Shown one piece after another: positions 380-64,000 of a stretch of DNA of 64,000 nucleotides. The position numbers and the translations under genes were made by a program. Source of the DNA: Perna viridis. Taxonomy: Eukaryota. The stretch spans positions 25,651,171-25,715,170 of the forward strand of contig CM074511.1 in assembly GCA_037379345.1 (NCBI GenBank), in the 5' to 3' direction. Each line of letters starts with the position of its first letter. Positions within the stretch are counted from its first letter, which is position 1. Below the pieces are notes generated by a model that was not told the origin of the DNA, ran no database searches, and saw nothing but the letters and a program-made list of their open reading frames with translations.

Positions 380-572
380 GTGCAGGTAAGAACCATGCTG
401 GAGCTAGCCATGCTGGTGAAGGAGGGGGTATAAGTGATTACTCTGGTGGAGCTGCTTACGATTCCTACCAGAAACCTATGTACATGGGATCTGGTGGCGA
501 TAACACTAAAGGAGGAGGATTACTCCATATCCAAGCTGCCAATGTTGTTCATAAAGGGGACATAACAGCAGA
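380..572 (+). CDS. exon w1, Gly-tract unit (GASHAGEGG...YDSYQKPMYMGSGG...)
   Basis: aag|GTGCAG acceptor (in-frame alternative at 386); donor GA|gtaagt; missed by the ORF track. Confidence 0.8.
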
Positions 573-3500
573 GTAAGTAGGATATATATTTAGTGTTAGG
601 TTTCTGGCTTTATCATTCCTTTCAATGTTCGGGTATCATGAAAGAAACTTAAATTGATATAGTCCTCAAATCCTTGAGTTTTTTTCTCTAATTTCAATAA
701 ATAAGCAAGCTGATTGGTTGAAAATTGAGTGGAAGAAAGACTTAGGGATTACTTCAAATTAAGTTTTATGAAGTTGGACATTGTTTCTCTTTGAATTAGT
801 GGACTTTAGGAAAATGTAGAATTGTAGAATATGACTTGATTGATTCAATGTGGAATTTATTTGTAATACAGTATCTCACTTTTTACCCATAATATGTGGA
901 GAGTTTCAGATAATCAAGATTGGAGAAAATTTTTCATGGCTAAAAAGGACAGAAAATGTGATATTTGTGTCTCTTAAAGGAGACGTGATGCAAAAATATC
1001 ATTTTTTAAACATTTATATTTATGAAAACTATAGTATGTTTAGATAGGAGTGTAACAAACGTTTTTTCATCAGGTTAGGGCTAAGTAAAGTTAGAATGAT
1101 TTATTTGTGTTATTACGACGATCTAATTAATATGCATAAATGAAATCCGGAAGTTAATAACACTCACTTACCATACATGGAAGTGCTATGTCATTGGTTC
1201 TCAATCTCCATTTGAGTGCATCGAAAATATATACACATGCCCGAAAAAATTAATAAATCTTTGAAAATAGCTTGCATATATGATGCAGAGTGGTCTAGTG
1301 ATCTGTGTATGAGTGTAATATTCATGTGTAAAAAGTAAGAAGACTAAAGTTCTTGTTTTCCGTCAGCTTTTCATTTTTTTAGGCATACATTCCCGCCTGG
1401 CGAAAATGCAACTACTTTGCACACTATTTTAGGACTTGAACAGGAGGGTACAACTAAAATAATGACATTCTGTGTATCGTTCTTTCTTTGACGCTAGGTT
1501 ATATCAATTAGCAAGCCCGGTAGGCTTAATTATGGCAAAGAGAAAGTGTAGGCGGCTTCTTTTATCTTAACATGGTTTGGCACCTCGTGACACAGGTATC
1601 GACACAGGTGTATAACTTGGATAATTGAAAAATAATTGCATTTCTTTTGTCTTACAAATTTTGAAATAAAACAATTCACATAGAGAATTTGACATGATAC
1701 ACAGTATATAATAGGTGACTCTATGTAAGTTTAAGTGAGCAATATTTTTTTATAGGTCAGTTAAAATATTTAATTTTAGCACAAAAAAAATTTAGAACAT
1801 GAGGAAGCTTTGGCACAAAACTCTTATGGGTTCTCAAATAAACCAATGAAAAATAAACATGTCAATATTATTCTGTTGCTGTAATTGCTGGATACAGGTA
1901 CACTTGTCAGGAGTAATATTCCGTTAAAAGGGGTGAAATCAATATTTTCATTGAAGATTGAGATCGGAAGTTTGAATCTTAGAATGGGAATTTTATTTAC
2001 TTGATGTAAAAAGTTCAATTGAACATGACAGAAAATAATGAAATATTTCTATGTAGTCTTCGAAAAGAAGTGGTGTCGTCTCTCTGTGGATTCTAGTCTT
2101 CATACTTGTAATAGTTAAATATTTCTGTCATTGTTTATCATTTTCTTCTCGAAGTGGTTTAAATTGATACAACTGTAAGTATATAAACTTTCAATATTTT
2201 CCCTCTCAGTTGTTGAAATCATGTAAAAAGTGCAGGAGCCCCACGCATTTCAACTACTCGATCTATGAATTGAGAACCAATGATGTAGTATGTTCATGTG
2301 ACCACATGGCTAATTCAAATTTGTATGGCTTGGTTCATCGTCGATTTTGAATTTATCTTTAATTAATTATTTAAATGACGTATGTGACTACAAGGGACAT
2401 TTTTATGATTTATATTTGGTGTAATAAATCCAATAAACCAAGAATTGAAAAAAAAAAAATTTGTGTCATGTCTCTTTTAACAATACTGTTTTTTTTTCAG
2501 TGGTGAGAGTGCTACATCAGCCAGTGGAGGAGGTTCTGGTGGTGGAGTATGGATCTCAGCAGCAACAAGTATTGATGTTACAGGTAAAAAATCTTGAAAG
2601 AAGGGGTATCATATTGGTCGGTTTATGTGTAAGTTTTTGTAAGAATCAGGCAAAATGGAAATTCTGAAACATGCCTGTCAAAACACCACCTATCTTACAA
2701 TATAATTTTACTCAAAGATACTTTGTTTATTTGAAAAGGCCATTGTTTAATCTCTGTATCACTGGATTTGCTCAGAAATTTTTCATCAGAATGTTTATAG
2801 AAAAATGAGGTATTTGACAGAATTATCTGCCCCATGAAATGTTCATTTTCAGTGTATTTCAATGAAATCATAACTCAGTTTTACCAACATATGGAAAATC
2901 TTCTCCTATTTCCTTGTTTCAAATTGCACTAGTCAAATTACACTTTCAAAGTGGAGGGGTTCAGAAAAAAAATCAAGAAATAGTTTGAAAAAGAGACAGT
3001 ATTTTGGGAACTTCATAGAGCTTGGTATTTCTCAGGCTTTAGTTGCTCATTGTATATTTAACATTTTCACATGACAATTAAATTATTTCATCATTAGTAT
3101 TATATAATTATAGGGAAAATAAGTGTTAATGGCGGTAATGGTATTGATGGTGGAGGCGGGGGTGGTGGAATTATCTCCCTTGAATACACCAATGGCAACA
3201 TTAAAGGTAACCTCATGGCCTATGGAGGTCATGGCAATGGCAATGGGCAACATGGTGCAGCTGGAGTTATCTACCTTGCCAAGGATATTAACTCCCTTTC
3301 ACCAGATAGAAAGGTTAGTCTTCAGTGATATACATGTATAAAGTTTACAGAAATTTTATAAATCAATATATTTAAATGCATTTATCATTACAATTTTACA
3401 ATTAAAGACCAAAATGCAAGTTTGAATTAATGTATTTTATAATTTCAATTTTGGCAAAAATAAAAGGTTACAATGATTTCAACATTTTGTTAATTGTTAT

Positions 3501-6500
3501 TTGAGACAAAAAAGAAATCTACCACTAATAAATGAGATTGAGAGGGGCTTGATTAAATTTCCTTGAAAATGAGTTTTTGTGAACTTCAGGATTATCATGG
3601 TTGACAGTAGCTTTATGAAGACATTTTTTTTTTTTAAATGTTTTACTTTGTTATATGCAAACAAATATTTAGAAATGTCTGTATTATGAAAATATTAAGC
3701 TACCACACAAATATTTCAAAAGACAAACTTTTAAAACAGCAATTTATTTTTGTACATGTAATACTTAAATGGATTTTTAAACATAAAAAGTTGCCAAATG
3801 TTTTATGACCAAAAATATAAAACAGAGCATTTATCCATTAATAGGTTATAATTAACAACAATGACGTACCAACTGATGCTTTTAGTAGAATTCCTGTACC
3901 ATCTACAGAATTTTCTGTTGAAATTGACCAAATTGACATCCAGACTGACGATAACGTAGCCTTTACTACCAGACCAGATATTGGCGCTGCTCTCAGTGTT
4001 ACAGTAGGGGACATAACTGGTACAACGCAGTCAAACTTCACCGTAGACAAATTTAATGAAGTCTACATTTCAACCAAATATCCATCAGCCGTATCAGAGC
4101 TTTCAATTAAATCATCCATTCACATTAGTAATTATGGTAAATTAGAGCTACCTGAAAATGTCATTGTTGAAAGAGGTCACATTCTGGAGATTTGTGGTAC
4201 GTTGATGTTTAAGACAAACAATGTATTTGTTAGAGATTCTGGTATTGTAAAAATAGGAAATCCAGCCCAGACAAACAGCTATTATGCTGGTACTAACACC
4301 CATAATCCACTGATGTGGAAATCATTAGTGATAGATTACAATGGGAAGTTTGAACACACATCCGAATGCATGAGTTCTGATCAGTCTACAATTTTACTGT
4401 TAGACCATTTAAATGTGTCAGCTGGCTACACTATCAATTTTAAGTCAATTCGTGTGAAAGCTTTACACACCAGTGAGATTAGTCCACTGTTGAATGCAAC
4501 TTGTGATAGCACAACAGATCTCCTCATCTACAGAGATACACAATGTGAACTGGCTGCCAAGGCCTACTCATATAACAGCATTGTCATAGAAGCTGGTGGT
4601 AAGCTTATCCTAACAGGAGACCCAGAAGGTAAAAATTTCACCAAAATCACAGTCACCAACCTCGAAATTAAGTATGGTGGGGTCATAGATGGAAAGGGTA
4701 AAGGTTATGTTTCTGGAGGTCCAGGTGAGCCTAGTGTTAGTTCATCTGGTGCGAGTCATGGTGGTGCAGGCAAGAATATTGCTAATCCAGTAGGAAAAAT
4801 TTATGGAAATATTGTCTCTCCAAAGGCTTATGGAAGTAATGGTCATGGTGCATCATCATTTTTAGGAACTGGTGGAGGCCAAATTGAACTTGTAGTTATC
4901 AATAAGTTCACATTGAATGGTGATATTGATGTGAGTGGATTTGATTCATCAACCTCTGGTGGCAGCGGTGGGAGCATACTAGTTACCACTAAGGATATGA
5001 CCGGTACTGGTACATTGTCAGCCAATGGTGGGTCAGGGGGAGGTGGAGGTGGAAGGATATCTGTGACTGTGTCAGAGGCTTACCGCTATGGTGGATTAAT
5101 GTCAGCATCTGGCAATGGTGCATCACCTGGTTAGTTAATATTATCAACTCTGGAATGATGAATAATTGATCCATAAGTTTGTTTTATTTTCTTATTTTAA
5201 GAATAAATTTTCATTCTTTGACAGCATGAATGAACATTTTTGAAAAACTGAAATCATGTGATTGAATGTTTTATTTATACAACTGAACTATGTTTAAAAC
5301 TCACTTAAGCCTGTAAGTTCTTAAGAGATACTTTAGATTGTTTGTTAATCTAAGTTTACTTCAAATTAACTGTGCTTATCACAAGCATTTTGAAACAAGT
5401 TTTAAATAGTTTGTAAGTTCATCTATTGAAATTCTTGTGGGGGGTAACTTGACAGTTTAAGCAAGTTTAATTATGGAGTTGAAGGTTATAAACTCTAAAT
5501 GCATAGTCGTTAATATTTGCAATTCAATTTTCAGGCACTGTGTATGTTTCTAAGACAGTTTCTGGGTCAGCATATACCACACTGTTGCTGAACCAGGCTG
5601 GTACTATAGACTTGATGGATGGACTTTCACTTCCAAGCTCACTGAATGAAGTCCAGCTGACCAATGGAACTTCTTTGTCACTTACAACAGACCTAGCTGT
5701 CAGTAAACTGATGTCAGATGGATCAGGAACTGTCACATTGTCTGACAATTCTAAACTGTCAATATCCTCATTTGATGACCTTAATCATGGTTGTCAGTGT
5801 AACTTTGACATTAAAGCTGGATCAACACTCCAGGTTAACACTGATTTTGACTTCACAGGAAACAATCCAACTCTAAATCTTGCAGGGTCTTTAATAGCGA
5901 ATACATTCAGAATCTGGGACCATGGAACTGTGACAGTCCAAAATACTGGAAACCTACAAGTCAACTCTCTGACTCTACATGAATATTCAACATTAGATTT
6001 GAAACCAGGAGCTATATACAGTAATGCTCAATCACTTACACTGGGATATAATTCCACATTAGTAGTGTATGATGACCCTTTAAGTTTGACCTTGACCTTG
6101 TTCCACATGAAGGTCAAATCAACATTAGATATTAGATCAGCCACTAAGACTATAAACCTTGAAGCCACTAATGTTATTATTGAGGATGATGCTGTATTGT
6201 CTGTTTCTGGTAGTGGGTCATTAACAGGTAAGTAAGGCAATATTTTTTAGTAACAGCATACCTGTTAACCTTTGGAACAGTCCATGTGGGAGACTCCCCC
6301 ATTGACACAGACTCATGTGGGGGATTTTTGCATAAACATAAATTGTTTATTTCAAAATTCAATTACTTCGTAAATTTCCACAGAAAACTTGGTAAGTTTT
6401 GCCAAAAACCTCCCACAAATCTAACATTTTTATGTTGGAAATTCTAATTTTTTTCATTGATAATGTGGGAATTCCCCTTACTGTGGGAGGGTTAACAGGT

Positions 6501-9500
6501 ATGGTAACAGTATATTGTTATGATGGGTTATGGTATTGCAGATTTCAATGAAATAATTAGATTAGCAAGGCCTTAAAAAAATAACATAAGTTCGAAAAAA
6601 AAATTGGGATTTTAAGAATTGATTGAATTTATCTGTTTGTGTAAATTGTTCAGTAGTGTAGTATGTTGTTTATGCAGAAATTATTAACAAGAGTATGGCA
6701 CCATTGAAACTTTCCACTGTGTTGATTATTTTAGGTTTGGGAGCAGGTGATGCAGAGAAAGGAGCCAGCCATGGTGGAGAAGGGGGAGACAATCAAGGCA
6801 CTACATATGGTTCAACAACTTCACCAACAGATGTTGGCAGTGGGTGTTCAACAGTTCGTGGTGGTGGTGTAATATCAATCAAGGCTACAACATTATCCAT
6901 CGATGGTGTCATATCAGCTGATGGTGAGAGTAGCTTCTCAACTGGTGCAGGCAGTGGAGGCAGTATTAAGGTCACAGGTGACAGTCTTGAAGGTCATGGA
7001 ATTATTTCTGTAAATGGAGGAAGTAGTACCAACAAGGGAGGTGGAGGTGGAGGTTGTCTTGCTCTAGATGTCAAGGTGGTGACCTCATTTTATGGTGGCC
7101 TTGAAGCAAAAGGCGGAAGAGGTGGGAAAAGCAGTGGGGCTGCTGGGACTGTTTATAAGTTGTACCAAATCACAGGTGGTGCATCAAAATCTGCATTGGT
7201 TATTTACAATGATGGCCTAGTTACAGATTCTCGGACAATTGTTAATGGTGTCATAAAAGTGTCAGAACTTGAAATAACAGGAAAGTCTAAGCTTATCTTT
7301 GACACCAGTGGTTCTCCAAATGTAGAGATAGAGCTAGTGGAAGGAGATAAAACGGGTTTACTGACAATTCAGTCAGGGCAGTACTTTGTCATTGCCACTA
7401 GCTATGGAACACAGTATGCCTTTTCTCTGCCATGTAAAATAGTTGTTGAAGGTGGAGGATATGCCACCCTGCCTGCTCAATTATTACTGGAGGATGACAC
7501 AGATGATGATGAATATAACCTAGATGTACAAGGAAATGTGATCGCACTGAGAAATCTTGTTGTGGGAGTGAATTCTAAGGCTTACTTAAGTTACAGTGCT
7601 CGCAGTGGTCTAACAACAACACAACCCTCTGATGTTGGAACATTCTCGCTAACTCAACTGGAAGTAACAACTGGTGGAAAGCTTGAAGTGTCTCAGGACT
7701 CAACTAGTAAATATACGTTAGATGTACTGGATGAATTGAATATCAAGTATGGAGGAGAAATTAGTGCAAGAAACTTATTCATCCAAGTTCCAACAATGCA
7801 GGTTGCATATGATGGCTTGTTAAGTGTTGATGGAAGCAATGGTAACCTTGGGACTGGGGCTGGTCAAGATGGCTCTGGAGGAAGTCATGGTGGTTCTGGA
7901 GGCACTTCCAGCTCTGGTGGGACAATAGTCAAACAATACACAGGAAGTCTATTCACTGCTGATGCCTTTGGATCCACTGGTGGTAACAAGTCTTTATCAG
8001 GTGTAGGCGGACCTGGAGGTGGCATGGTAAAATTGAAGGTCACAAAACAACTGACCTTGGATGGAGTGATTAGTTCCCATGGTAACAGTGGTATGAATGG
8101 TGGTGGAGGAGGGAGTGGTGGGTCTGTTTCTATTGAAATTGTAGACATGTTAGGAGCAGGATCAGTTTCTGTTGTTGGTGGGAATGCTATCGGTGGTGGT
8201 GGTGGTGGAGGTGGTGGTAGGATTTACCTCATGTGTACTGGTGATTATAACTATACTGGTGTCTACAAACTAAAAGGAGGTAACTCAGACACAGGTCAAG
8301 CTGGTGGTTCTGGTACAGCATACCTCCAATATCCTTACAGCAATATCCAGTTCCGTAAACTTTTTACTTCCAACTCAATGGTCACAGGACGTACTGTCGC
8401 CGCTACTTATTTTGATACACCTGGTACCCCTCTAGTTGAACTTGATGAGATGGAGGTTGGAGACAAGACAACAATAAAAGTTACAACAGCGGGTCTTCAT
8501 GTGATAGCATCCACCTTGGTATGTGGTGCAGATTCCCTCCTTAATGTACAGGATAATGTGATATTCAGTGCTGATGTTGAGAGCTCATACAGCAAACTAA
8601 CCTGCAGTTTACACATCGATGAACATGGGGAGGCAAGGTTACCAAAGACAGTTGAGTTACTAGGTGCTAATAATGAGTTCAAAGGTGAGGCTTTATCTCT
8701 TTATGATATTGAAACTAAATTATTTTTTTGTCAGAACAATTTGTTATGCTTATGAGTTCAAAGGTGAGGTTTTATCTCTTTATGATATTGAAACTAAATT
8801 ATTTTCGTGTCAGAACAATTTGTTATGCTTATGAGTTCAAAGGTGAGGTTTTATCTCTTTATGATATTGAAACTAAATTATTTTGGTGTCAGAGCAATTT
8901 GTTGTGCTAACAAATAGTCACAAAAATAAATGTCCACAAATAAATTCTTTTGTTATGGAATACATTTTGAGTATATAGTGTTAATCTTGATAACAAACAT
9001 AAGTAAAATTTGATTGATATCCTAAAATGCCAAAAATAAGAATGCAAAAATATGAAATGCTTTACAATAGAAGAAACATATTATTCAAAGCATGCATATA
9101 AAAGTTATTAAACACTCCAATATCTTGTTTACTTTTAACCTCCTAGTTATTATTATTTTGACACCTTTTGAGGAGGTAGACCTAGGGTAAGGGACATAAC
9201 CCATGAAGTCAGTGATATGTTTGTATCATATTCAATTTTACCAAAGCTTACCAAGCTTTCATTTGACACAGAATGAAATCAAATCTAAGTTGCTTTGATG
9301 CTTACATGACATTGACGTAAAATGCTGAGTACAAACGTTCCAATGCTTTGTAAGGGTTGTGTCCCTTACTTTAGGTCTACCTCCTTAAAGATGTATTATA
9401 TATGAAAATGAACTTGAGAAATAAAGAAAACTAAGATTTAGTGTCAACACAACATAATAGAAAATGATGACAGATATACATTAGATAAAACACACTCTGT

Positions 9501-54500: not shown

Positions 54501-57500
54501 TCATACATTTTACCAAATGGGCAATATAAATCTTCAAATTCTAACAGGAGCTTGTCGATATTTCAAAACATGTGCCAAGGAAGTAGCTTTAAAGATAGAT
54601 TCAAAAATTGTTACAGTCAGTACTATCAATGGTGGTCATGTAGAAATAGATGGTCAGGTAACATCCTTGGAAACAGTGGCCAACCTTGGGAGTAGCTTCC
54701 AGATGGGACCATTAGACAGTTCGGTGTACAAAATATACAAAACAGGATTTGAGTTAATTGTATACGTACAGGAGGATTACATCAACATCAGGCTATCTAT
54801 AACCACAGCTTATTGTTCTGCCTCAGAAGGACTTGTGGGTGGGTGTATTATAAAGTCACATTTTTGCAGTTCCAACGATTATCCATGCTTAATCCGATAT
54901 GAAGGTCTAGCTAGTGTCTGCGCCAGTCATGTTATTTCAGGAACATCAATACTGCAGTATGCTAGTATATGGCACAAGACATATACATCGAGCATATTTA
55001 ACGAGATTGCAACAACCTTCAATCCTTCAACAGGAGTTGCTATCAATACAGGATGGATTCAGACAGTTCCGTGGGAGCAAGGCTTTCTCGGAGAATCAAC
55101 TACAATTGAAACTAGATTGAAAATTACTAGTCTAGATGGCAAGGGAGATGGTGGCACAGTCTTGTCATACAGCTGGAGAAGCACTACTGCTGTCTGCATA
55201 GTAAACGGAAAGTTTTTGGTGTCTCTAGGATCATATGTTGTATCTACTGGCATTCAAGTTCGACTTAATCAATGGACACAAATAACACTGGTTTACAACA
55301 GCTTATCTGGTTGGATAACTTTCCACTACATTTATGGCAATGATATCACTGAGTTCACATCAGTTTATCTTGGTATTGGTGCTTTTCCACCGAGAGGAAC
55401 TCTTGTTGTTGGAGAGTGGCAGCCGCCAATTGTAGGCGGAGGAGACATTCCACCTGGAATATTTATCGGTGTCATTGATCGTGTACTTGTATGGAACAGA
55501 CCTTGTATTCCAACACAAATATTTATCCATTGGAAAACCAGTATTTTACAGATAACAACAGGCTTAGCAGCTGGTTGGAACTTAGAAGTTGGTAACGGCA
55601 AAATATCAACTGACATAGTTAACAACTACAAACTGACAATATCCGACAAGGGATGCACATGGATACCAACTGATCTTCCTGATACAAGAACTAACACTCC
55701 AAAGATTGATGTCAACATTGGTATCCCAGAACCCGAAATAAACAGTAAATGCAACAGTCTGCTAAACAGCTCTGCGATTTCTAGCAAGTGCAACGATCTG
55801 GCTGTCAGTTCATCATTTTACATCATGGCGTGCATTGAAGACATTTCAGTCACAGGAACAATGGACTTTAGCATGGATAGCACTATTGCATTTGGATCAA
55901 TGTGTGAAGTGGAGAAAGACATCTCACCGCCATATCAGTCGCTTTGTAATGACTTCGAAACTAGAACATTCCCAGTGTGGAAAGGACAAGACTGCACTGC
56001 TAAATGTATTTTTGGAAAATTCATTCTAGAATCATCATATTGTCAATGTTATAGTGGTTACTGGGGAGAGAAATGCGACCAGGTTTGTCCAGGTGGAGCA
56101 TCTAATCCATGCAACGGTCATGGCACTTGTCAGAGGGATACTGGTAAATGTTCATGTCTAGAGAACTGGAATGGAGATGACAATTGTGGAACATGTACAA
56201 CGGGATATATTGGCACTGATTGTAATGTAGCAGAACCAGAACTTCCTTCAAATGCACCAATGGGATGCTTTGCAAGAAAACATGGGAATTATGGCAACTT
56301 TACTGGACACAGATTTAGCTATGCAGAACCAGGAAATTACTTACTGACTGAGCTTAATAACCTCAAAGTAGAGGTAGGTAGGACTTATTTAGATTGCAAA
56401 GCAATATAATATTTTACTTTTAGTTATTCAACTATGCAAATAATTATAGAACAAACTTTTGAAAATCTTAAGTTTTAAATTTTTGTATAATTCTACCATG
56501 GACAATAACATAAAAAAATAGTTTTAATACTTTTTCACTGATAAATTGTACCTAAATCACACTAGAAAAGGCTCTTTCCCTGTTAAGTATACTTTTATTT
56601 ATAACATTTAAGTGTAAGTGTTTGTAAGAATGAGGCAAAATGGAAAAAATCAGAAACATGCATGTCAAAGCCCCGCCAATCTGACAATGTAATATCACTC
56701 AAGGATACTTCCTCTATTAGAAAAGACCATTATTTGATCTCTGCATCACTGACTTTTCAGTAGAATTTTAGAAAAAAATTAGGTATTTGACAGATTTATC
56801 TGCTGTTGAAATGTTCATTTTCAGTGCATTTCAATGAAATTGTAAGTCAATGACCCAACATGATATGGAAAATCTTGTCTGTTTTCTTGATTCTGATGGT
56901 GCAAATAGTCAAATTACACTGTCAAAATGATGGGATTTTTCATACCATGTTTCACTGACTGCGTGATTCTTACATGAACTGACACTTAACAACTAAGATG
57001 AAATCAAGTTTTATGTGTTAAAATGCCTGCCTTGTGACATGTTCATATTCTTCTTTGAAGGTAAGACAAGTATCTTGTAAATGGCGAAGAGGACAGAGTG
57101 TATGCATGGATGCTGTGTCTATCAAGATACACAAGACAACTGTTACCTACCTCTCTCATAATGACACCATCTGGGTTGATGGCAAAGAGGTCCAAGTTAC
57201 TCTAGAAAGACGTAAGAGAATAGAGGTTGAAGGTGGATGCAAAATCCAACTTCACAGACCTTCGGAGAGAGTTACAAGATACATCATGAACGAATTAGGA
57301 TTTGTTGTTCGAATTAGGCGACACGTGCGCTTTGATAAGTTTATAGCAGTCGTAAGAGTTAAAATTGGAACTGATTTTTGTTGCAGTTCTCCTCCTATCC
57401 GAGGAATATGTGGAGGATGTAAAGACTGCTCATCTTATACTCCTACAATGCCTTGTTCAATGGATCTAACAACCACCAGTACAACAATGACACCAACTAC

Positions 57501-60500
57501 AACAATGACACCAACTACAGTAATGACACCAACTACAACAATGAATTATTTGAATGATAGTAGCATCGATTTGACAGGTTCAAGAACATTTGCTACTACA
57601 ACTGAAGCCTCTGACACTGTGACAAATATATTCAATCCTAACACTCTGCCCCCTGGAAGTTCTATTTTGGAAGAATCTGGGGTAGATGAAACATCTGTAG
57701 CAGGGATAGGACCGGGTAATGCTGTTTGCAATGATGATGCATCTATGATCACTGAACAAGTACAAATTTTCAACAGCGATTATGTTTCAATAGAGTTTTT
57801 CGTCAAGACTTGCCATGAAGACAGATGTCTTGGTACCATATTGTCATACACTAGTGTGAAGACATTTGCCGTGAAGAACATGAATGGAAAGCTTGTCATA
57901 ACCTATGGAGAGTTAACCTTTAACCTCGGTCTAATTCTGGAAAACGATAAGTGGAGTCAAGTAGGTTTGATCTATGATGGAGGCACCTATCTTTATGTTT
58001 ATGTCTTTAATAACTCTGGAACGTACAGGCGAGAGCTGGTAGAACTTGATGGTACGCATCCATTCAGTGGTAAAGGACGATTGGCGTTAGGCAAATGGCA
58101 GCCGCCACCAGGTGGGTCTGGAGATCAACCATTGAATGAAGGATTTGAAGGATGTATCGATGAACTCAGAATTTGGAACAGGTGAGCTCTATATATGGTT
58201 AATATTGCTTATCAAATAAATTAGGGACACATGACATCAATAAGGTACGTATTATATATGCCGCTTTTAAAATATAAAGATGTTAAGGAATTAATCATAC
58301 CAAATAAGCATATTACTTTATATTCATTTTTATTTATTGTTATAGAATTTATATTTTAACTTGGAAGTTTTGTAATCTGATAACTTTTAAATGCTTGTCA
58401 ATGAAACAAATTTTCCTTACTGAAATTATGTAATATTTTGTTTAGGTACCTTGGTTTAATGGAGATAAAAAACCATTGGAATAGAACCTACACTGTTGAT
58501 GATGAAGGGTTGTCCTCTCTCTGGACCTTCAATGAGGAATTAGGTACTTCATTTGAACTTAAGTAGCTGTCTTTGTAAGAATCATGCAAAATCTGAAAAA
58601 TGTGATACGCCCCAAAAAAGGCTACACATTTTTATTTTTGTAATTAAGTTGTTTTATGGGTCTATACTATGAAAGATGTAATTATTCATTCAAATCTGCC
58701 TACTCTTAGGAGATAATCGACATTGAAAATACAGTAGATTCTATTGTATTTGAGTGTCATTTATCTCCCTTAATTTTGAAATCTACAGTGCATTCTATAT
58801 AATTTTATCTCCTTAGAACACGGGATGTATGAAAAACTGAATGTGAATTTCTGTTCACTACGTATAAGGAAATTCAAACAAAATATCAAAAATAAAAATA
58901 TGTAGGTTTTTTACCCATGAATCACATTTTGCATGATTCTTAGCTGGAGTGCTACTTAACATGAGTATCAAAACAAACAAAACGGATATTTCAGCTCATG
59001 TTCATTTTTGTTGTGTACATCAGTTTTTGTTGTCTAGTAGTTACCCCAGGATTATGTTCTTTTTTATTACTGGTTTTCTTGTGATTTCTCTTTCAAAATG
59101 CAGATTTATCTTCCTCTAAATATACTTAATTCTTTGCCTTTGAAGAATTAAGTTATTTGTTTTTAAGTTCTTAACCAATAATTATATTATATGTTCTTTT
59201 CTTTGGTTCTTTGACTATAGTAAATGCTAAGATCTTGATGATGTGTTGTAATAGTCATATTTATCTAACATTAAGTTAAACTTTAATTCTGAAGTTTATC
59301 ATATATTTTTAATGTTGTAGTAATATTAATAAAAAGTGATATATTTGATAAAATTTTAAATGTTTATGATTGTAGATGGTACATGGACAGCAGAGAATAG
59401 TGGTATTGTTTTAAGGAATCCAGTTAGTCCATTTAATGGAGGAGTTGTAAGGCTATCAGATGCTCCTATTCCCTTTGTTGCGTCTCCAGTGGATGTCAGC
59501 CCACCGTCGGATATACTCGTTTCATCACAGATCGGAAAACGTAGGAAGAGGGCTACCATTTATGTACCCATCAGTACTGCATCATTCTGTGAACAAGTTT
59601 TCAGCTCGAGCAATTTTGCAAGGTATCTAAAATTATCATAATATTGATGCCCCTTTGTTACATTCGTTAAAGCTTTGATTTAATTTGTTCAATAAGTATT
59701 GTAAACGTACTAAATTTTGCTTTTTTCGCGGTGGACAGAAAACTGCGAATAATTGTATCTGCAAAATTTATCTTTAACACTATACAACACTAATTATTTT
59801 TTTTAAATCGCGAAAAATTAATACCCCCGAATATGTCCCAAAAAATTAATACGTTACAGTATTTGTCAGTTAAAATTAGAAACTTCTCATGAAAATAATT
59901 TGGTATTAATCTGTGTATCATTAGCATTGATAGCTCATCCATTTAACTGATCGTTTGCATGATATGAGTGATTGATTCATTGTTATTTATGTCATTTTTG
60001 TACACTTTTTTTTACCATTGATATTGAACCTGCGTTAACATTTTCGAATTTGTATTTGTGTAATCGGGAACAAAAAATTTCGGTATACACTGATTTTTAT
60101 GAGACAACATAATATTAGGAGCAAGGTCAAAATTACCACGTAGAGAGTACTAGAATAATGATAAGGATTTTTTTTTATTGAAAAGCAATATAATGTAATA
60201 GGCAAAACATGTTTAAAACCAATTAAGAGAATTCGATCCTTTACATTGTTTTCTCTTAATATTTATAGATGGAAAACATGGCAATCAAAACAAAGTTCTA
60301 AACAACCTTACAAACCAACAAATAAGACTGACATATGTTTACATTAAGTACATAACCTGTAAAATCTGTACAAGATACTAAAGGGGTTTTAACGTCCTTA
60401 ACTACCCTGTCGGGTCTCGCATGGACGGATCTGTACAAGATTAAAATTTGTACTACTTATATTTTCAGCACCTGTACACCAGCAGGAAGTAGTTTGAATC

Positions 60501-63500
60501 AGAAATACAAGTATGAATGTGAACAAGCACAAGATCCTGAAGACTTGGAAGATACCATCTTGGAGTATGCAGACTATTGCCAATATATCCTTGAATTAAG
60601 CACCTGGCCAGGACTGTCACTATGTACTGAAATGACAAATGATGCTGCGTTCAACTCAGTGTTTGGGGACCATTGTGATCCACATTGCTATTTTGGAACC
60701 AAAAATGGAGGCACTGAATGTGTTTGTAACAAAGGATATTGGAATACGACATGTGACACAGAATGTCCTGGGGGAGCCGCCTCTCCATGCTCAGGCTATG
60801 GAACATGTGATCAAACAGGATCATGTGACTGTCCACTCAACAGAAAAGGTGCAGATGATTGTTCTGTCTGTACTGATGGCTGGATCGGACCTGACTGTGC
60901 TGTAGCAGAAAACACCATCGCTGGTAATCAGTCCATTGCCCTGGCAAGTCAATTAGGTCACATGACAAATTTGGATGGTTTGAGCTTTATCGTCAGAGAA
61001 CCAGCAGTGTATTCATTGCTTACCATAAGTGATGTCATTGCCATTCAGGGAAAACTAGTAGCGTGTCATCAGAACTATACATGCATCACATTTTTATCGG
61101 TGAGACTTGGGGATACTTCGGCAGGATTTTCAACCATCACATTCAAGACTCCAAGACTCAAAACAAGTAAACCTATTGTTTACATTGAAGACCAAGAAAC
61201 CACAGTTGATGAGCCATTGTACTTCAAGGGTTTTAGTTTAGAAAGGATTGACATCGATGAATTGAAGATAAAGATTGAAGACCAAGCTCAAGTTGGTGTA
61301 AGGCTGCAAGGGCAATACCTTGTTATGGAAGTTATATTGAGTCATCAGTATGTCAGCACCACAAGTGGAATACTCGGAGGTTCAGGAGTCAGCAACTCAA
61401 CATTGAAAATCAATTCATTACTGTACAAAGAAGTTTTCTCTCCAAATGTATGTGTATACACAGGACCAACACAGACTCCACAATCAACATACCAGGCATA
61501 CACATTGCAAATTAGGGGCATCTCACTAAACAAAAACATGTCCCGGCCATATTCTTTTGAATGGTCAAGATTTGTTGTCGTACCTTGTGATGAGTTCATC
61601 TACTACCCATTTATCTATTACAAAACACAAAATGTTGGTGGATACAGCTTGAACTTTGCTTCATCTATAATATATGGAGAGGTTGACTTATACACAACTG
61701 TAGGTCCCAACATTACTTTTGAATTCTTGACTAAAATTGCCAACAAGTCTGATGATGGAGGTGTTCTGCTTTCCTTCAGTAACACCAAGCTCTTCATTGT
61801 CCAAGTGTCTAGTGGAATAATTGACATAGAATATGAAAACCAGACATACTCAACTAATCTCACTCTTCAGAAAGGAGAATGGAACAAAGTCATAGTGATG
61901 TACTATGGTGAAATTGGAGATTTTGACATCTATGTCTTCAATAGTGTAGGATATATCGAAAGGAGAAGCTATGAATTACCACTTCATATTTTCAACGATC
62001 CTGGAACACTTTCCATTGGTCATTGGCAACCACCATACAACAGTAAAGTCATGTCAGCTCCACGCCCATTTAGTGGATACATTGACAATTTCTTGGTATG
62101 GAAAATATCCTTGGAGCCAAATATTGTGACGGACATCTTTCAAATAGACCCACTAGATGTACAACACTTACTGAACCACCTTTGGCAATTCGATGAAGGT
62201 CAAGGGTCTATTACATCTGACGTACTCAAAGGCAGCATCATAAACCTACCTTCATCACCATGGATACCACCAGAGTGGATTCCTTCAGATGTGTATTATG
62301 TCAAAAATAATTATCCAGGTGTCACGTTCGTTAAATTCGACAGCTCAACAGTCAAAAAAGAAGCTGATAATCTTTGTAGCCAAGTAATGGACAATACTAT
62401 ATCATCCTGTATTGGACTGGCAACTGCTACAAAACAAATATTTTACTCAGCTTGCCTTCAAGTGTACAGTACTACCAAAGATTCAGCAAATGCTTACAAT
62501 GTTATCTTGAGCTATGGGCGCATTTGTAAGCTGTCTTTAGACCTTGCTTCTCCACCAACAAATAATTTATGTAGCAGTCTGCTCAGCAGTGAAAGTGAAA
62601 ACAGCGGATGTACTAAGACGTGTTCATTTGGTGAAAAGCAAAACGACGGGTCATGTTCATGTACATCTGGGTATTTTGGCACGACCTGTTCGGGTATATG
62701 TCCAGGAGGATCTGACACACCCTGTAACAATCATGGGAAATGTACAAGCTTGGGTCAGTGCGCTTGTAACTGGAATTGGAATGGTGATACCGAATGTGGA
62801 ACATGTACAGGAGGTTTGATGGGACCAGATTGTAGAATTTTTTACCACGGCTCGTCATTTGGGACAAAAGCATACGTTACCGGCAAGGGTGATTACATGG
62901 GTTTCAATGGCTATCAAATTTCTTTAGATGAGGCAACTGGAGTTTTTACAGTTTTCAATTCACCTTCCAATTTTGCAGTTGAAGTATTCCAAGTAAGCTG
63001 TATATATGGTACCTGCATAATAGGAGTGTCAATCAAAACTTCTTCAAACCAACTTGTTATCATGCCATCAGGACAGAATGATATGCCTCCATTTGTATAC
63101 AAGGATTTAGTCAAGATTGAATACGAGACCACTACAACGTTACCTGGCCTTAAAATGGAAATGAAGTCTTTCACAGAAATAGAAATTTCTGTTGGATCGA
63201 GTACCATCAAACTTTTGGTCCAGTACAATGGTATAGACATATCAATGGACATACTATCACCAGTGTGCTCCTCATCAACTGGAATTGTTGGAAATTGTGG
63301 CGGTACCAGCGAAACATACACTACATACAATCAAAACAACCTGATGCAGTACGTTACGAACACATATAGTTCGGCAGATGGACCAATAGTTCAAACAATG
63401 CTTGCAGTTTTTGGACGTAATGTAAGCCATGACTCCGGATTTGCTTTATCGTTCAATGAAACGTCGTCTTTGACAGATACACTTACATACAGACAAAACC

Positions 63501-64000
63501 ATACTCTGGACAGCAACAGTTTTAGTTTAAGCTTATACTTCAAACCTAAAACCGAGGGTGGAGTCCTACTAGCCTACAGTAAAAACATGACGTTTTCCAT
63601 ACTGAATAGAAATCCAATAATAATGCGATGCGGTACAAAGATCATAACGACTAATGTGACTACTCATCAAAATCAGTGGAACCAGATTGTCACAACATTC
63701 GACAGAACGAACAACAAAATCCATTTTTACCACTATGGACCAAATCTTACTATACGATATCAGATAATCGAAGACTTCTGTTCTGACTTATTTATAGAGG
63801 GAGGCAAAATATCGCTCGGAGAGTGGATACCATCAATCGATTCTGAGAAATATTCATACACAGAAACGTTTGACGGAGAAATAGAAGAAGTGTCAGTTTG
63901 GAAAGATCCAATACCCGCCCCTTTGATATTCCAAGCCGAAAGCCTAAATGTAAAATTGTCCGGTTTCCTAAAAAATGTAACATCTCTTTGGTCGTTCTCA
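380..64000 (+). CDS. Giant multi-exon gene (40 exons in window, partial at both ends, >12,300 aa): Gly-tract repeat region, tenascin-type EGF array, and VWD/LamG/EGF super-repeats; predicted extracellular protein
   Basis: All long + strand ORFs are bounded by AG acceptors and GT donors. Exon lengths sum to 36,902 nt, and intron phases match at all 39 junctions. Repeat motifs continue across junctions. Confidence 0.9.
627..780. mobile_element. degenerate MITE related to 12152..12311
   Basis: Shared layout tcatgaaa...cctcaaatcctt...tgattggttgaaa...ttttatgaa. Confidence 0.5.
2501..2583 (+). CDS. exon w2 (GESATSASGGGSGGGVWISAATSIDVT)
   Basis: poly-T cag acceptor; G|gtaaaa donor; phase 2 to 1. 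Confidence 0.88.
2638..2965. mobile_element. MITE-like repeat (TAAGAATCA-terminus family), homologous to 56623..56974
   Basis: Long colinear similarity, e.g. aggtatttgacaga.ttatctgc and tgaaatgttcattttcagtg.atttcaatgaaat. Confidence 0.7.
3114..3313 (+). CDS. exon w3 (GKISVNGGNG...GAAGVIYL...)
   Basis: tag acceptor; AAG|gttagt donor; phase 1 to 0. Confidence 0.88.
3845..5129 (+). CDS. exon w4, spacer plus Gly-tract unit
   Basis: Open frame includes ORF 4202..5134; tag acceptor; G|gttagt donor. Confidence 0.92.
5535..6227 (+). CDS. exon w5, beta-rich spacer
   Basis: ORF 5540..6235; ttttcag acceptor; G|gtaagt donor. Confidence 0.92.
6257..6503. mobile_element. MITE with 14-bp perfect TIR and 7-bp TSD (P-superfamily-like)
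   Basis: CATACCTGTTAACC...GGTTAACAGGTATG, flanked both sides by GTAACAG (6250-6256, 6504-6510). Confidence 0.8.
6735..8684 (+). CDS. exon w6, two Gly-tract units
   Basis: ORF 6695..8755; ttttag acceptor; AAG|gtgagg donor (first of three tandem copies). Confidence 0.92.
8673..8908 (+). repeat. 79-bp tandem repeat x3 spanning the exon w6 donor site
   Basis: atgagttcaaaggtgagg starts at 8673, 8752 and 8831. Confidence 0.95.
9171..9385. mobile_element. MITE family K (Kolobok-like termini), copy 1
   Basis: TIR GGAGGTAGACCTAGGGTAAGGGACATAAC / GTTGTGTCCCTTACTTTAGGTCTACCTCC-TTAA; homologous to 29984 and 30222. Confidence 0.8.
9762..10102 (+). CDS. exon w7
   Basis: ORF 9728..10123; tttacag acceptor; CAG|gtaagt donor. 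Confidence 0.92.
10126..10220 (+). pseudogene. decayed tandem duplicate of the 3' part of exon w7
   Basis: Translates MLQPGPIIDLISGGHADEK versus exon TLQPGSTIDLSGGGHAAEN; TAG replaces GAG. Confidence 0.8.
10301..10499. mobile_element. MITE with TACTGTAAAC...GTTTACGGTA termini (TA-flanked, Tc1/mariner-type)
   Basis: ~19-bp imperfect TIR; relative at 59697..59861. Confidence 0.7.
10795..10999 (+). CDS. exon w8 (ISSHDLATGAGYASLGG...GGAGGGYLKIET)
   Basis: tttttacag acceptor; G|gtaaag donor; not in ORF track. Confidence 0.88.
11052..11466 (+). mobile_element. Helentron/HINE-like non-autonomous repeat interrupted by a family A fragment
   Basis: ttatacccc start and gggggtatg end; core shared with 28770..29135. 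Confidence 0.55.
11117..11251 (+). mobile_element. family A 3' end fragment, opposite orientation to the other copies
   Basis: ttatgttctttgttgtgt...ccatgtctggtctttgtcc.tggattac is the reverse complement of ~18840..18970. Confidence 0.75.
11852..12035 (+). CDS. exon w9 (GAIKVDGSDG...GGGSGGRMKLILKE)
   Basis: tatag acceptor; AG|gtattt donor; phase 1 to 2. Confidence 0.88.
12152..12311. mobile_element. palindromic MITE (PIF/Harbinger-like termini)
   Basis: ttcataaaacaatctcaaattgagattttcct versus aggaaaatctcagtttgagatgttttatgaa; ~45-bp TIR. Confidence 0.7.
12408..12660 (+). mobile_element. degenerate HINE-like repeat; relative at ~31970..32225
   Basis: ttatacctc start, gggggtatc end; shared cacagc.acttgatattt.gacagaa.ctt. 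Confidence 0.45.
12749..12978 (+). CDS. exon w10 (YAFSGTITAYGG...AGPGTIYIQDG...)
   Basis: ttttag acceptor; G|gtatcc donor; phase 2 to 1. Confidence 0.88.
13336..17345 (+). CDS. exon w11 (4,010 nt), three Gly-tract units
   Basis: ORF 13419..17363; ttttcag acceptor; CTG|gtaagt donor. Confidence 0.94.
17458..17730 (+). mobile_element. HINE/Helentron-like non-autonomous repeat
   Basis: tatatcccc 5' motif, ctgtcc remnants, gggggtatc, then hairpin gtgagctctgcttac and a T-run. Confidence 0.5.
18339..18510 (+). CDS. exon w12 (DIKYSALFKAD...GAGHATIGG)
   Basis: ttttag acceptor; T|gtaagt donor. Confidence 0.88.
18840..19160 (-). mobile_element. Penelope-like retroelement 3' end (family A), 5'-truncated
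   Basis: Colinear with 35606..35902 and shares the same 3' terminus. Confidence 0.75.
19357..19590 (+). CDS. exon w13 (...AYGSLYKPNETGSQGG...GGGSGGSICII)
   Basis: cacag acceptor; G|gtattg donor; ORF 19398 frame. Confidence 0.88.
20121..20482 (+). CDS. exon w14
   Basis: tttaag acceptor; AAG|gtagag donor; ORF 20300 frame. Confidence 0.88.
21075..21432 (+). CDS. exon w15
   Basis: ORF 21063 frame; acag acceptor; G|gtacaa donor. Confidence 0.88.
21733..22029 (+). CDS. exon w16
   Basis: ORF 21723 frame; ttttag acceptor; A|gtatgt donor. Confidence 0.88.
22387..28611 (+). CDS. exon w17 (6,225 nt), about five Gly-tract units, rich in N-glycosylation sequons
   Basis: ORF 22329..28622; acag acceptor; G|gtatgt donor. 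Confidence 0.95.
28770..29135 (+). mobile_element. HINE-like repeat with two internal tandem core units
   Basis: tctgtc microsatellite remnant; atttgg.gtgtggcttcatatagatg.ggcata occurs twice (~28890 and ~29038). Confidence 0.55.
29595..29728 (+). CDS. exon w18 (GGHGHDSATAGSQYGSVMSATEPGSGGG...)
   Basis: acag acceptor; GAG|gtgatt donor. Confidence 0.87.
29984..30195. mobile_element. MITE family K copy 2, TTAA-flanked
   Basis: TTAA-GGAGGTAGACCTAGGGTAAGGGA...TCCCTTACCCTAGGTCTACCTCC-TTAA. Confidence 0.88.
30222..30434. mobile_element. MITE family K copy 3, TTAA-flanked, adjacent to copy 2
   Basis: TTAA-GAAGGTAGACCTGGCATAAGGGACATAACTC...GAGTTGTGTCCCTTACCCTAGGTCTACTAAC-TTAA. Confidence 0.82.
30948..31098 (+). 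CDS. exon w19 (ELRLDGTIKTTG...GSGSGGSIMM...)
   Basis: tacag acceptor; T|gtaagg donor. Confidence 0.87.
31618..31895 (+). CDS. exon w20
   Basis: ORF 31551 frame; ttttcag acceptor; CAG|gtaaaa donor. Confidence 0.9.
32325..33927 (+). CDS. exon w21, last (Cys-decorated) Gly-tract unit and start of EGF array
   Basis: ORF 32313..33938; tttacag acceptor; G|gtaaat donor. Confidence 0.93.
34272..34733 (+). CDS. exon w22, EGF-like repeats
   Basis: ORF 34367 frame; ttaag acceptor; G|gtttgt donor. Confidence 0.88.
35019..35309 (+). CDS. exon w23, EGF-like repeats
   Basis: ORF 35078 frame; ctttag acceptor; G|gtataa donor. Confidence 0.88.
35606..36010 (-). mobile_element. longest family A copy: ORF C-terminus plus 3' UTR of a Penelope-like retroelement
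   Basis: Minus strand 36007..35861 reads LTNRLLEQGYVATRLKSSLHKFYGCHHELVDRYGVSICTTKTDLFNGS*, resembling a PLE RT thumb terminus. Confidence 0.7.
36335..36476 (+). CDS. exon w24, EGF-like (GCESATHTCTCRPGWTGIGC...)
   Basis: ttctag acceptor; AG|gtaata donor. Confidence 0.88.
37080..37741 (+). CDS. exon w25, EGF-like repeats
   Basis: Frame of ORF 37477; aaag acceptor; G|gtaaga donor. Confidence 0.88.
37902..38008 (+). CDS. exon w26, EGF-like
   Basis: tttgcag acceptor; CCT|gtaagt donor. Confidence 0.88.
38325..39060. mobile_element. ~735-bp foldback element with nested inverted repeats
   Basis: taataggataatt...aattatcctatta termini with ~100-bp arms; inner IR gagtgaaattac.gaatttattt.acagtgtgaatta. 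Confidence 0.8.
39155..39337 (+). repeat. 94-bp tandem duplication just upstream of the exon w27 acceptor
   Basis: gcatcat.tg.tggttgacttggaacctctt starts at 39155 and 39249. Confidence 0.9.
39357..39525 (+). CDS. exon w27, EGF-like
   Basis: atag acceptor; G|gtgagt donor; GWYSEDCSKPCVHG... Confidence 0.86.
39970..40140 (+). CDS. exon w28, EGF-like
   Basis: tttacag acceptor; G|gtgagt donor. Confidence 0.88.
41333..43075 (+). CDS. exon w29, long run of tenascin-type EGF repeats
   Basis: ORF 41314..43125; ttccag acceptor; G|gtaagt donor. Confidence 0.94.
43574..43750 (+). CDS. exon w30, EGF-like
   Basis: tttcag acceptor; G|gtaaaa donor. Confidence 0.88.
44389..44543. mobile_element. 155-bp hairpin, probably the terminus of a non-autonomous DNA element starting near 43990
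   Basis: aggattaaaca.ctatttt.ggttgttcatgcatgtatgaatggatctc and its reverse complement; ttcatac.tgcatgaac also occurs twice at 44048..44093. Confidence 0.7.
44920..45168 (+). CDS. exon w31, EGF-like
   Basis: ORF 44973 frame; tttcag acceptor; G|gtagga donor. Confidence 0.88.
45513..45836 (+). CDS. exon w32, EGF / laminin-EGF-like
   Basis: ORF 45713 frame; tttgcag acceptor; G|gtatga donor. Confidence 0.88.
46061..46174 (+). CDS. exon w33, laminin-EGF-like (CQCHDDDINGHWTGSACDECVSGW)
   Basis: tacag acceptor; G|gtaagt donor. Confidence 0.88.
46540..46825 (+). CDS. exon w34, unique non-repetitive domain (PVFRC...YTAWFGYNN...)
   Basis: ORF 46530 frame; tgtag acceptor; AA|gtaagt donor. Confidence 0.86.
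47070..47412. mobile_element. right arm of the 38325..39060 foldback family
   Basis: Colinear with ~38738..39060. Confidence 0.8.
47669..47786 (+). CDS. exon w35, end of the unique domain
   Basis: ORF 47562 frame; ttgtag acceptor; GTG|gtatgt donor; phase 2 to 0 bridges w34 and w36. Confidence 0.85.
47995..48165. mobile_element. degenerate TACTGTA-terminus MITE
   Basis: tactgtatagggcgtaattttc versus ccaaaattacccactaaacgcta. Confidence 0.4.
48279..48442. mobile_element. MITE with CA(G)GGGCGGATCCAG-type termini (hAT-like)
   Basis: caatggcagatccaga...tctgaatacgcccctg; catgcc direct repeat on both flanks. Confidence 0.55.
48673..56373 (+). CDS. exon w36 (7,701 nt), four full EGF-VWD-LamG-C8-like units and start of the fifth
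   Basis: ORF 48610..56409; ttttcag acceptor; GAG|gtaggt donor. Motifs HxxTFDG (VWD-like) and FxGxIDExRxW / WxFxxGxG (LamG/pentraxin-like). Confidence 0.95.
56623..56974. mobile_element. MITE (TAAGAATCA-terminus family)
   Basis: tgtaagaatgaggca...tgcgtgattcttaca; homologous to 2638..2965. Confidence 0.72.
57061..58181 (+). CDS. exon w37, basic VWD-like segment, Thr-rich repeat and LamG-like domain
   Basis: ORF 57034..58185; gaag acceptor; AG|gtgagc donor. Confidence 0.9.
57481..57544 (+). repeat. coding 18-bp minisatellite x3.5 (TTMTPT)
   Basis: acaacaatgacaccaact tandem copies in exon w37. Confidence 0.95.
58446..58543 (+). CDS. exon w38 (YLGLMEIKNHWNRTYTVDDEGLSSLWTFNEEL)
   Basis: ttttag acceptor; G|gtactt donor; completes the LamG LWxF motif. 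Confidence 0.87.
58576..58942. mobile_element. MITE with perfect 17-bp TIR
   Basis: taagaatcatgcaaaat / attttgcatgattctta, plus inner IR ctaca.atttttattttt / aaaataaaaatatgtag. Confidence 0.78.
59376..59622 (+). CDS. exon w39, contains KRRKR
   Basis: ORF 59360 frame; tgtag acceptor; AG|gtatct donor. Confidence 0.87.
59697..59861. mobile_element. MITE related to 10301..10499
   Basis: tattgtaaacgtactaa...ttaatacgttacagta; shared tttaacactata.aacactaat.attttttt. Confidence 0.68.
60469..64000 (+). CDS. exon w40 (runs off window end), units 6 and 7 of the EGF-VWD-LamG super-repeat
   Basis: ttttcag acceptor, then TCTPAGSSLNQKYKYECEQAQDP...CPGGAASPCSGYGTC...CPGGSDTPCNNHGKC.... Absence from the ORF track is consistent with no stop codon before 64000. 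Confidence 0.9.

Follow-up and report, generated by a model that had tools for sequence, protein, structure and literature searches.

Gene Structure and Reading Frame

The window examined here is a stretch of 64,000 nucleotides (nt) of the Perna viridis genome (contig CM074511.1, 25651171-25715170, from an assembly of 723 Mb), and the coordinates given below are counted from its first letter. It is the central 64 kb of one transcribed gene of ~170 kb, which encodes a succession of glycine-rich repeats, an EGF array, a unique region, and a series of EGF-VWD-LamG-C8 units. This domain order had been proposed from the letters alone in an earlier reading of the same DNA (hereafter the original prediction), together with a chain of 40 exons and 39 introns (36,902 coding nt) that has neither start nor stop in the window. 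The domain order was confirmed, and independent exon chaining recovered the same 40 exons (386-64000, plus strand, 36,935 nt), with no stop in the chain and no start codon inside the 64-kb window.

Chaining was performed with a splice-aware dynamic program that combines codon log-odds (trained on large open frames versus intron-like stretches), GT-AG sites, and explicit phase tracking. The plus-strand chain has a score of 2,899, versus a score of 84 (4,588 nt) from the same program on the minus strand, and stop-free stretches reach 2,611 codons on the plus strand versus 166 codons on the minus strand, the large ones being found on the plus strand only. An extra 29-nt first "exon" at the window edge was rejected as an artefact of that edge.

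Because a phase-demanding program always yields consistent phase, evidence for the junctions was sought that is independent of the program. A profile of the glycine-rich module, built from five modules, runs smoothly across the splice junctions, exon by exon: six successive exons between 18339 and 22688 match profile positions 241-302, 305-377, 380-411 followed by 1-43, 96-193, 230-304, and 311-411. Even the tiny 83-nt exon at 2501-2583 still encodes the expected GGGSGG rung. The intron that separates it from the exon at 386-572 carries a dispersed repeat of ~1.5 kb (at ~970-2480), which occurs in dozens of copies at 77-85% identity on many contigs.

Transcript Evidence Across the Region Boundaries

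Contigs from three sequencing runs, belonging to three studies, were aligned on a 5.9-kb part of the window (43400-49300). The type of these runs is a guess: they were taken as RNA because their share of the stretch's words (0.44-0.49) equals the exonic share of the stretch, and because the contigs are without introns. In each contig, seven consecutive pieces (43573-43748, 44918-45165, 45510-45834, 46059-46172, 46538-46825, 47669-47785, and 48672 onward) follow one another at unbroken record coordinates, with edges 1-3 nt from those of the model exons (junction ambiguity); the first six total 1,268 nt, equal to the total of the six complete model exons that they cover. Since contigs of three studies join these seven exons, a single transcript contains the EGF array together with the unique domain and the VWD region, and it keeps the frame across the EGF-to-VWD boundary, one of those that the original prediction had proposed to check with RNA. 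The contigs are 41,572, 9,088, and 8,453 nt long. The longest continues for 28,940 nt before window position 43,573, more than the exonic sequence that the model holds upstream within the window (22,968 nt), and for 10,735 nt after 49,300; if this contig is collinear with the gene, one RNA covers all three regions.

The boundary between the glycine-rich repeats and the EGF array, a point of concern in the original prediction, needs no splicing because both sides share one exon (32325-33927), in which the last module is followed by EGF_Teneurin/EGF_TEN matches in a single open frame. This exon is conserved across bivalves. In homology searches, which were all run exon by exon and not with the joined spliced protein, 11 protein clusters cover it at 93-100%, with identities down to 39% and EGF families recorded for all of them, and a named protein of Dreissena polymorpha matches it at 46% identity and 57% coverage.

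The Glycine-Rich Module

The original prediction counted at least 16 "Gly-tract" repeats, and the profile finds 16 modules within the window, each of ~415 residues with glycine-rich rungs such as GGGSGGSI and GGGGSGGRI. Sequence comparison places the module in no established family: the only Pfam match is to G8, in one exon (3845..5129) at E 1.6e-4 and 22.0 bits (versus a cut-off of 22.9), the search of NCBIfam gave nothing meaningful, and that of PDB sequences gave no matches at E ≤ 1. An AlphaFold2 model of the module at 23943-25235, computed from a 20-row alignment, has a mean predicted local distance difference test score (pLDDT) of 80 and consists nearly entirely of short strands. Foldseek returned nothing significant for this model (best E 0.057), and VIA-align, run against 48,161 chains, returned right-handed β-helix proteins for all of its top 50 matches (Z 9-15), led by EtpA (Z 15.0), tapirin (14.9), HMW1 (14.3), and VacA p55 (14.0), with pertactin, Ag43, tailspikes, and polysaccharide lyases lower in the list. 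Because VIA-align returns only β-helix proteins, the "Gly tracts" are best read as the turns and rungs of a β-solenoid, and the repeat is, as modeled, a right-handed β-solenoid module of a family without a Pfam model. The repeats of the original prediction are thus upheld, with the correction that they are solenoid modules rather than collagen-like or disordered tracts.

A scan of 1.84 billion representative sequences with the module profile gave 9,165 matches at E ≤ 0.001. The longest protein among the best 150 of these has 6,192 residues, and a full VWD-LamG-C8 unit occurs in none of the 150. Named relatives are few among the matches listed and come from a hemichordate and from bivalves; the Saccoglossus protein has 4,555 residues and 15 module-matched stretches. 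The glycine-rich stretches are also 40-55% identical to proteins of ~2,000 residues, the few named ones of which belong to Verrucomicrobiota and Planctomycetota. A metagenome protein of 4,695 residues (JGI contig), encoded in an intron-free frame, combines four module stretches with Laminin_G_3 and teneurin-type EGFs, so the pairing of the module with LamG and EGF is not confined to bivalves.

The EGF Array and the Unique Region

The EGF array comprises ~48 EGFs, with 290 cysteines in 1,715 residues, and its subtype is EGF_Teneurin/EGF_TEN (E 1e-27 to 1e-53 in a Pfam-type scan of the exons). Between the array and the first VWD unit lies the unique region of 133 residues, which is transcribed, as seen in the RNA contigs. 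It has no matches in Pfam, and the Atlas offers only weak leads (0.77-0.79) to bacterial hypothetical clusters.

The EGF-VWD-LamG-C8 Units

Nine units of the order EGF-VWD-[LamG/pentraxin insert]-C8 occur in the whole gene; for the window, in which the original prediction saw at least seven such repeats, six complete units and one partial unit were counted. Its label for them is borne out by Pfam (VWD in 13 of 15 aligned units, Laminin_G_3 in 12 of 15) and by structural alignment. A model of unit 2 (pLDDT 77) aligns by VIA-align with D assemblies from MUC5B, VWF, and MUC2, with Z scores of 24-26 and a root-mean-square deviation of 2.6-3.0 Å over ~260-277 residues (best match Z 26, 3.0 Å, 277 residues, to MUC5B and VWF D2). 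This alignment covers model residues 76-609, i.e., the VWD and the C-terminal helical cysteine-rich domain together, and residues 285-498 match the LamG-like domain of PAPP-A (Z 20-21) and pentraxins (Z ~18). In the model, VWD and C8 are thus packed as in the VWF/mucin D assemblies, with a jelly roll inserted between them.

The nine units share merely 21-27% pairwise identity, which indicates that they are old and individually maintained. No TIL/E modules, PTS domain, or CTCK were found in Pfam searches at E up to 1 of the 15 units and the exons, nor was a GDPH autocleavage motif found. Unit 5 is the only unit interrupted by introns, and it alone, in the whole model, carries R-X-K/R-R sites: RRKR in the exons 57061-58181 and 59376-59622, and RIRR in the former. 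The RRKR sites are possible sites of furin processing, as judged from the motif.

Gene Ends and the Whole Protein

Extension of the model into the flanking DNA, as the original prediction had suggested, placed a predicted signal peptide at -99.3 kb and a predicted transmembrane helix near +69.7 kb. The gene spans window positions -99,271 to +69,667. Its exon at -99,271 opens with the signal peptide MRRLLALLSLLFVGLRYTEA and continues into module-like sequence, and its last exon, which runs to 69,664, encodes units 6 to 9, a single hydrophobic helix (ILLIIIIICCIIPVIILIICCCCWF), and a low-complexity/disordered cytoplasmic tail of ~470 residues with a PPSY motif, followed by the stop. The modules number ~31, the outermost lying at -79.8 kb and +33.2 kb, and every one is on the plus strand; a profile search of the flanking DNA found none upstream of -79.8 kb or on the minus strand. 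Summed from exon-wise translations, the whole model has 114 exons and ~21,650 residues, distributed over the signal peptide and modules (~13,700), the EGF array (~1,715), the unique region (133), and the C-terminal region (6,118). The single protein of more than 12,300 residues in the original prediction stands as one protein, but in the full model it is nearly twice that size.

The product appears, from its sequence features, to be a type I membrane protein anchored at the cell surface. Of the two forms that had been suggested earlier, secreted or membrane-tethered, the signal peptide, the one transmembrane helix, and the cytoplasmic tail support the latter.

Two features at the gene ends complicated the model. 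The signal-peptide exon recurs in part 3.1 kb further downstream (~-96,388 to -95,866; contig 25554782-25555304), in a copy that is 100% identical but misses the initial 48 coding nt, and the gene finder took this copy as the third exon. At the other end, the gene finder ran on past the stop at 69,664 to exons at 75,985-122,867; this run-on was rejected because the last exon already has the transmembrane helix, tail, and stop. The pieces of the run-on sit in the spacer described below or on the wrong strand of an inverted copy of the gene.

Taken as a whole, the observations are best explained by one giant gene for a membrane-anchored β-helix/EGF/VWD filament protein, to which we assign a probability of roughly 0.72. 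Several points weigh against this explanation. The exon chain is not proof in itself, given a program that demands phase; the 41.6-kb contig is an assembly through repeats and could be chimeric outside the aligned 5.9 kb; and the 5′ third of the gene (the exons before ~-23 kb) rests on the gene finder and on module homology only. Furthermore, the first two introns are ambiguous because exon 1 has this partial copy, and the VWD-C8 pairs have no TIL or CTCK beside them, so mucin-like polymerization is not assured.

Some of these points would also be expected if two or more adjacent genes of the same strand (e.g., a β-helix gene and a VWDE-like EGF/VWD gene) had been merged by read-through or by contig assembly. 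The frame-consistent chain would then be a product of the search, which returns one regardless, a contig spanning two genes does not show a single transcript, and relatives that have modules but are without VWD units exist, such as the Saccoglossus protein. We nevertheless regard such a merger as very improbable: the β-helix-to-EGF switch lies within an uninterrupted exon that is conserved across bivalves, the EGF-to-VWD passage is spliced exon to exon with the frame kept in contigs of three studies, and the model contains no in-frame stops from the signal-peptide exon to the last exon. In addition, a second signal-peptide-like start was not noticed in the exon translations inspected, although no systematic search was made, and the sole transmembrane helix of the last exon (the only exon scanned for such helices) lies at its end.

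The Inverted Second Copy

An inverted repeat of the entire gene, in which the signal-peptide exon is 97% identical and the last exon is also present, lies ~46 kb downstream, tail to tail with the first, on the minus strand at contig 25,767,000-25,926,500 (~window 116,000-275,000). The gene of the window is termed copy A here and the inverted one copy B; no module matches occur elsewhere in the genome. Over the whole window the copies are collinear at 97.6-98.4% identity and differ by 1.0% in exons and 2.5% in introns. Of the codon differences, 158 are synonymous and 179 non-synonymous; stops are absent, and the indels (3, 6, and 18 nt) all keep the frame. The ~46 kb of unique spacer between them contains other long open frames on the plus strand (75,912-77,774 and 83,112-85,199), and one spacer frame begins with the signal-peptide-like sequence MFLCVVVFVALIPVVFSLKCSNC.

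Copy B could be the other haplotype misplaced in the same contig, with one gene per haploid genome, a possibility to which we give somewhat less than even odds. The collinear identity of 97.6-98.4% is within the allelic divergence expected in bivalves. Variant bases in contigs of one DNA run (X15) equal the copy-B base at 28 of 30 positions, those in the RNA contigs do so at three of three on an otherwise copy-A background, and at 46338-46391, where both forms occur, each has about half the depth of the shared sequence. However, the 264 kb surrounding the first copy contain no N, the two arms are parted by ~46 kb of unique sequence with its own open frames, and both copies keep all large frames open. 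Bubble-popping, or gene conversion between true paralogs, would likewise produce mosaic contigs, and the variant bases, which fit two haplotypes, also fit either of these explanations.

Exons of the Window

The 40 exons of the chain and the support for each are listed in Table 1.

Table 1. Exons of the giant gene within the window, with their content and the evidence for them; modules are numbered over the whole gene.
Feature	Coordinates	Strand	Content and support
Exon	386..572	+	Gly-rich part of module 16, profile 292-347
Exon	2501..2583	+	GGGSGG rung, module 16; chaining
Exon	3114..3313	+	Module 16 end and module 17 start; chaining, profile
Exon	3845..5129	+	Module 17; weak G8 match
Exon	5535..6227	+	First part of module 18; chaining, profile
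Exon	6735..8684	+	Modules 18 to 20; chaining, profile
Exon	9762..10102	+	Module 20, profile 172-284
Exon	10795..11020	+	Module 20, profile 289-343
Exon	11852..12035	+	Module 20, profile 353-409
Exon	12749..12978	+	Module 21 start; profile
Giant exon	13336..17345	+	Modules 21 to 24; exon-sized orthologous open reading frames in Mytilus (78%) and Solemya (49%)
Exon	18339..18510	+	Module 24, profile 241-302
Exon	19357..19590	+	Module 24, profile 305-377
Exon	20121..20482	+	Module 24 end and module 25 start; profile
Exon	21075..21432	+	Module 25, profile 96-193
Exon	21733..22029	+	Module 25, profile 230-304
Giant exon	22387..28611	+	Module 25 (end) to 30; module 23943-25235 modeled as β-solenoid
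Exon	29577..29728	+	Module 30, profile 300-344
Exon	30948..31098	+	Module 30, profile 347-391
Exon	31618..31895	+	Module 30 end and start of last module (31)
Junction exon	32325..33927	+	Last module (profile 149-397) and first EGFs, single open frame
Exon	34272..34733	+	EGF array; chaining, translation
Exon	35019..35309	+	EGF array; chaining, translation
Exon	36335..36476	+	EGF array; chaining, translation
Exon	37080..37741	+	EGF array; chaining, translation
Exon	37902..38008	+	EGF array; model only, Cys-rich EGF-like translation
Exon	39357..39525	+	EGF array; model only
Exon	39970..40140	+	EGF array; model only
Large exon	41333..43075	+	EGF array, EGF_TEN E 1e-53
Exon	43574..43750	+	EGF; spliced in RNA contigs
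Exon	44920..45168	+	EGF; spliced in RNA contigs
Exon	45513..45836	+	Last EGFs; spliced in RNA contigs
Exon	46061..46174	+	Cys-rich linker; spliced in RNA contigs
Exon	46540..46825	+	Unique domain, without family match; spliced in RNA contigs
Exon	47669..47786	+	Unique domain end; spliced in RNA contigs
Giant exon	48673..56373	+	EGF-VWD-LamG-C8 units 1 to 4 and unit 5 start; unit 2 (50536-52362) modeled
Exon	57061..58181	+	Unit 5: divergent VWD, LamG; RRKR site
Exon	58446..58543	+	Unit 5; model only
Exon	59376..59622	+	Unit 5; second RRKR site
Last exon	60469..64000, on to 69,664 outside the window	+	Units 6 to 9, transmembrane helix, 470-residue tail, stop

Relatives and Comparison With Known Families

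Among named proteins, those nearest to the giant exon at 13338-17345 come from Mytilus galloprovincialis (78% identity) and Solemya velum (49%), both labeled "hypothetical", and many unnamed exon-sized open reading frames match it at 43-80%. Contigs of two other samples carry counterparts of the giant VWD exon that equal it in length, are 64-68% identical, and are each followed by the same next exon. These matches mark the animal as a mytilid-like bivalve and the gene as old within the bivalves, with orthologous giant exons retained in related species. The named relatives (Mytilus, Dreissena, and Solemya) are "hypothetical" fragments of 831-2,033 residues, well short even of the 6,192-residue relative mentioned above, which bears out the earlier expectation that annotation would split the gene. 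No full-length gene model in relatives turned up in the exon-wise searches or among the best 150 module relatives, and the protein may thus be unannotated as a whole.

A relative from Owenia fusiformis (27% identity) was considered as an orthologue of the whole architecture and rejected, as it belongs to a VWD-array locus without β-helix modules. At that locus (CAIIXF020000001.1:55,444,172-55,469,991), abutting long frames are full of VWD repeats, with one complete EGF-VWD-LamG-C8 unit, and adjoin a called product of 10,597 residues; a further giant gene is probably under-annotated there.

The combination of β-helix modules, EGF array, and VWD units is known from no described protein and is a new architecture; the original prediction, too, knew of no protein with it. 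A literature search for the combination found nothing relevant, and one on VWDE and teneurin gave papers on VWDE and Equinox only. Each of the families named in that prediction shares part of the architecture at most, and the protein is not a teneurin, tenascin, gel-forming mucin, zonadhesin, or SCO-spondin. With teneurins and tenascins it has the EGF subtype in common. Teneurins, however, are type II proteins with an N-terminal cytoplasmic domain, whereas here the signal peptide comes first and the transmembrane helix and tail are C-terminal. No Pfam hits to the NHL, YD-shell, or Tox-GHH domains of teneurins, or to the FN3 and fibrinogen domains of tenascins, were found in any large exon, and the array has ~48 EGFs versus ~8 in teneurins. 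Pfam likewise gave no hits to MAM and TIL, features of zonadhesin, or to TSP1 (TSR) and LDLa, features of SCO-spondin. Gel-forming mucins and VWF share the VWD-C8 pair of the D assembly (Z 26), but here a LamG/pentraxin domain is inserted, the protein is membrane-anchored, and TIL/E, PTS, CTCK, and GDPH were not found.

VWDE is similar in that it combines VWD with teneurin/tenascin-type EGFs. VWDE itself is secreted, has ~1,600 residues, and carries a single VWD ahead of its EGFs, in contrast to the nine VWD-LamG-C8 units, ~31 β-helix modules, transmembrane helix, tail, and ~21,650 residues found here. For the Pfam family "Vwde" (PF26129), the precomputed hits to the giant VWD exon and to its orthologues are weak or faint, and the hmmscan listings of this study do not include it.

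PKHD1, PKHD1L1, and CEMIP/TMEM2 are animal surface proteins with a right-handed β-helix, the fold returned for the module, and PKHD1 and PKHD1L1 are large type I proteins. The G8 match here is nonetheless below the Pfam cut-off, and proteins of the PKHD1 type have one or two β-helix regions and TIG domains, as opposed to ~31 tandem glycine-rich modules and no TIG. The best structural matches of the module are bacterial adhesins (EtpA, HMW1, FHA, pertactin, and Ag43) and tapirins (Z 12-15), a likeness limited to the fold and short motifs: here there is no TPS or autotransporter secretion signal, and the module is fused to EGF and VWD in an animal protein. Dumpy of Drosophila and MUC16 are membrane-anchored extracellular giants of ~22,000-23,000 residues with hundreds of small modules. 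They offer an analogy only, as EGF is the sole shared domain and there is no ZP, DPY, or SEA domain here (for ZP, no Pfam hit in the exons scanned).

Proposed Function

We infer that the protein serves at the cell surface as a filament for adhesion or of the apical matrix. Tethered by its membrane anchor, such a filament would be very long; with typical dimensions of ~0.48 nm per β-helix rung and 2-3 nm per EGF, its extended length could reach several hundred nanometers, an estimate from domain sizes. The distal β-solenoid rod may bind ligands, most likely glycans or matrix, by analogy with bacterial adhesins, tailspikes, and proteins of the CEMIP/PKHD1 type, and the EGF array would act as the stalk. 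The membrane-proximal VWD-C8 units may mediate lateral or disulphide-linked assembly, as in mucins and VWF, and the RRKR sites in unit 5 could allow a furin-type protease to separate a distal part from a membrane-bound one. The working principle would resemble, by analogy, that of Dumpy, MUC16, or PKHD1L1.

The same furin-type sites bear on a different function, that of a secreted or shed polymer forming a gel or matrix (a scaffold of mucus, byssus, or periostracum), for which the membrane anchor would be a transient state before cleavage. Cleavage at the two sites would free ~17,000 residues, the VWD-C8 pairs fold like the D assemblies of mucins and VWF, and two papers (PMC7333891, PMC9168380) report EGF- and VWD-rich proteins in mollusc adhesive secretions, which counts in favor of such a polymer. 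Even so, it seems an unlikely role. A PTS/mucin domain, TIL, and CTCK were not found with Pfam, and four more units, the transmembrane helix, and the long tail lie behind the cleavage sites, which suggests a lasting membrane-bound function.

Beyond the single gene, it is conceivable, though we put this forward only tentatively, that bivalves and perhaps other marine invertebrates possess an undescribed class of giant cell-surface filament, whose distal half would be a rod of an estimated ~0.2 μm built from ~31 β-solenoid modules akin to bacterial adhesins in fold and glycine-rich motif, joined to an EGF stalk and to a variant of the D assembly with a LamG/pentraxin domain between VWD and C8. 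Such filaments might form a coat that binds glycans or microbes, or an apical-matrix anchor, on epithelia such as those of the gill and mantle.

Significance

Titin is larger, and Dumpy and MUC16 are among the largest animal proteins after it; at ~21,650 residues, the protein described here would rank with the latter two. It appears to escape current annotation, which breaks it up into exon-sized "hypothetical proteins". The analysis defines two entities without a family model, namely the ~415-residue β-solenoid module and the VWD-[LamG]-C8 unit, the latter of which indicates that a whole domain can be accommodated between the two core modules of the D assembly. The twin inverted copies make the locus a useful test of how a true palindromic duplication can be distinguished from a haplotype duplication in long-read assemblies. 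For mussel biology, the gene supplies a definite candidate molecule for the surface coat, for adhesion, or for anchoring the matrix.

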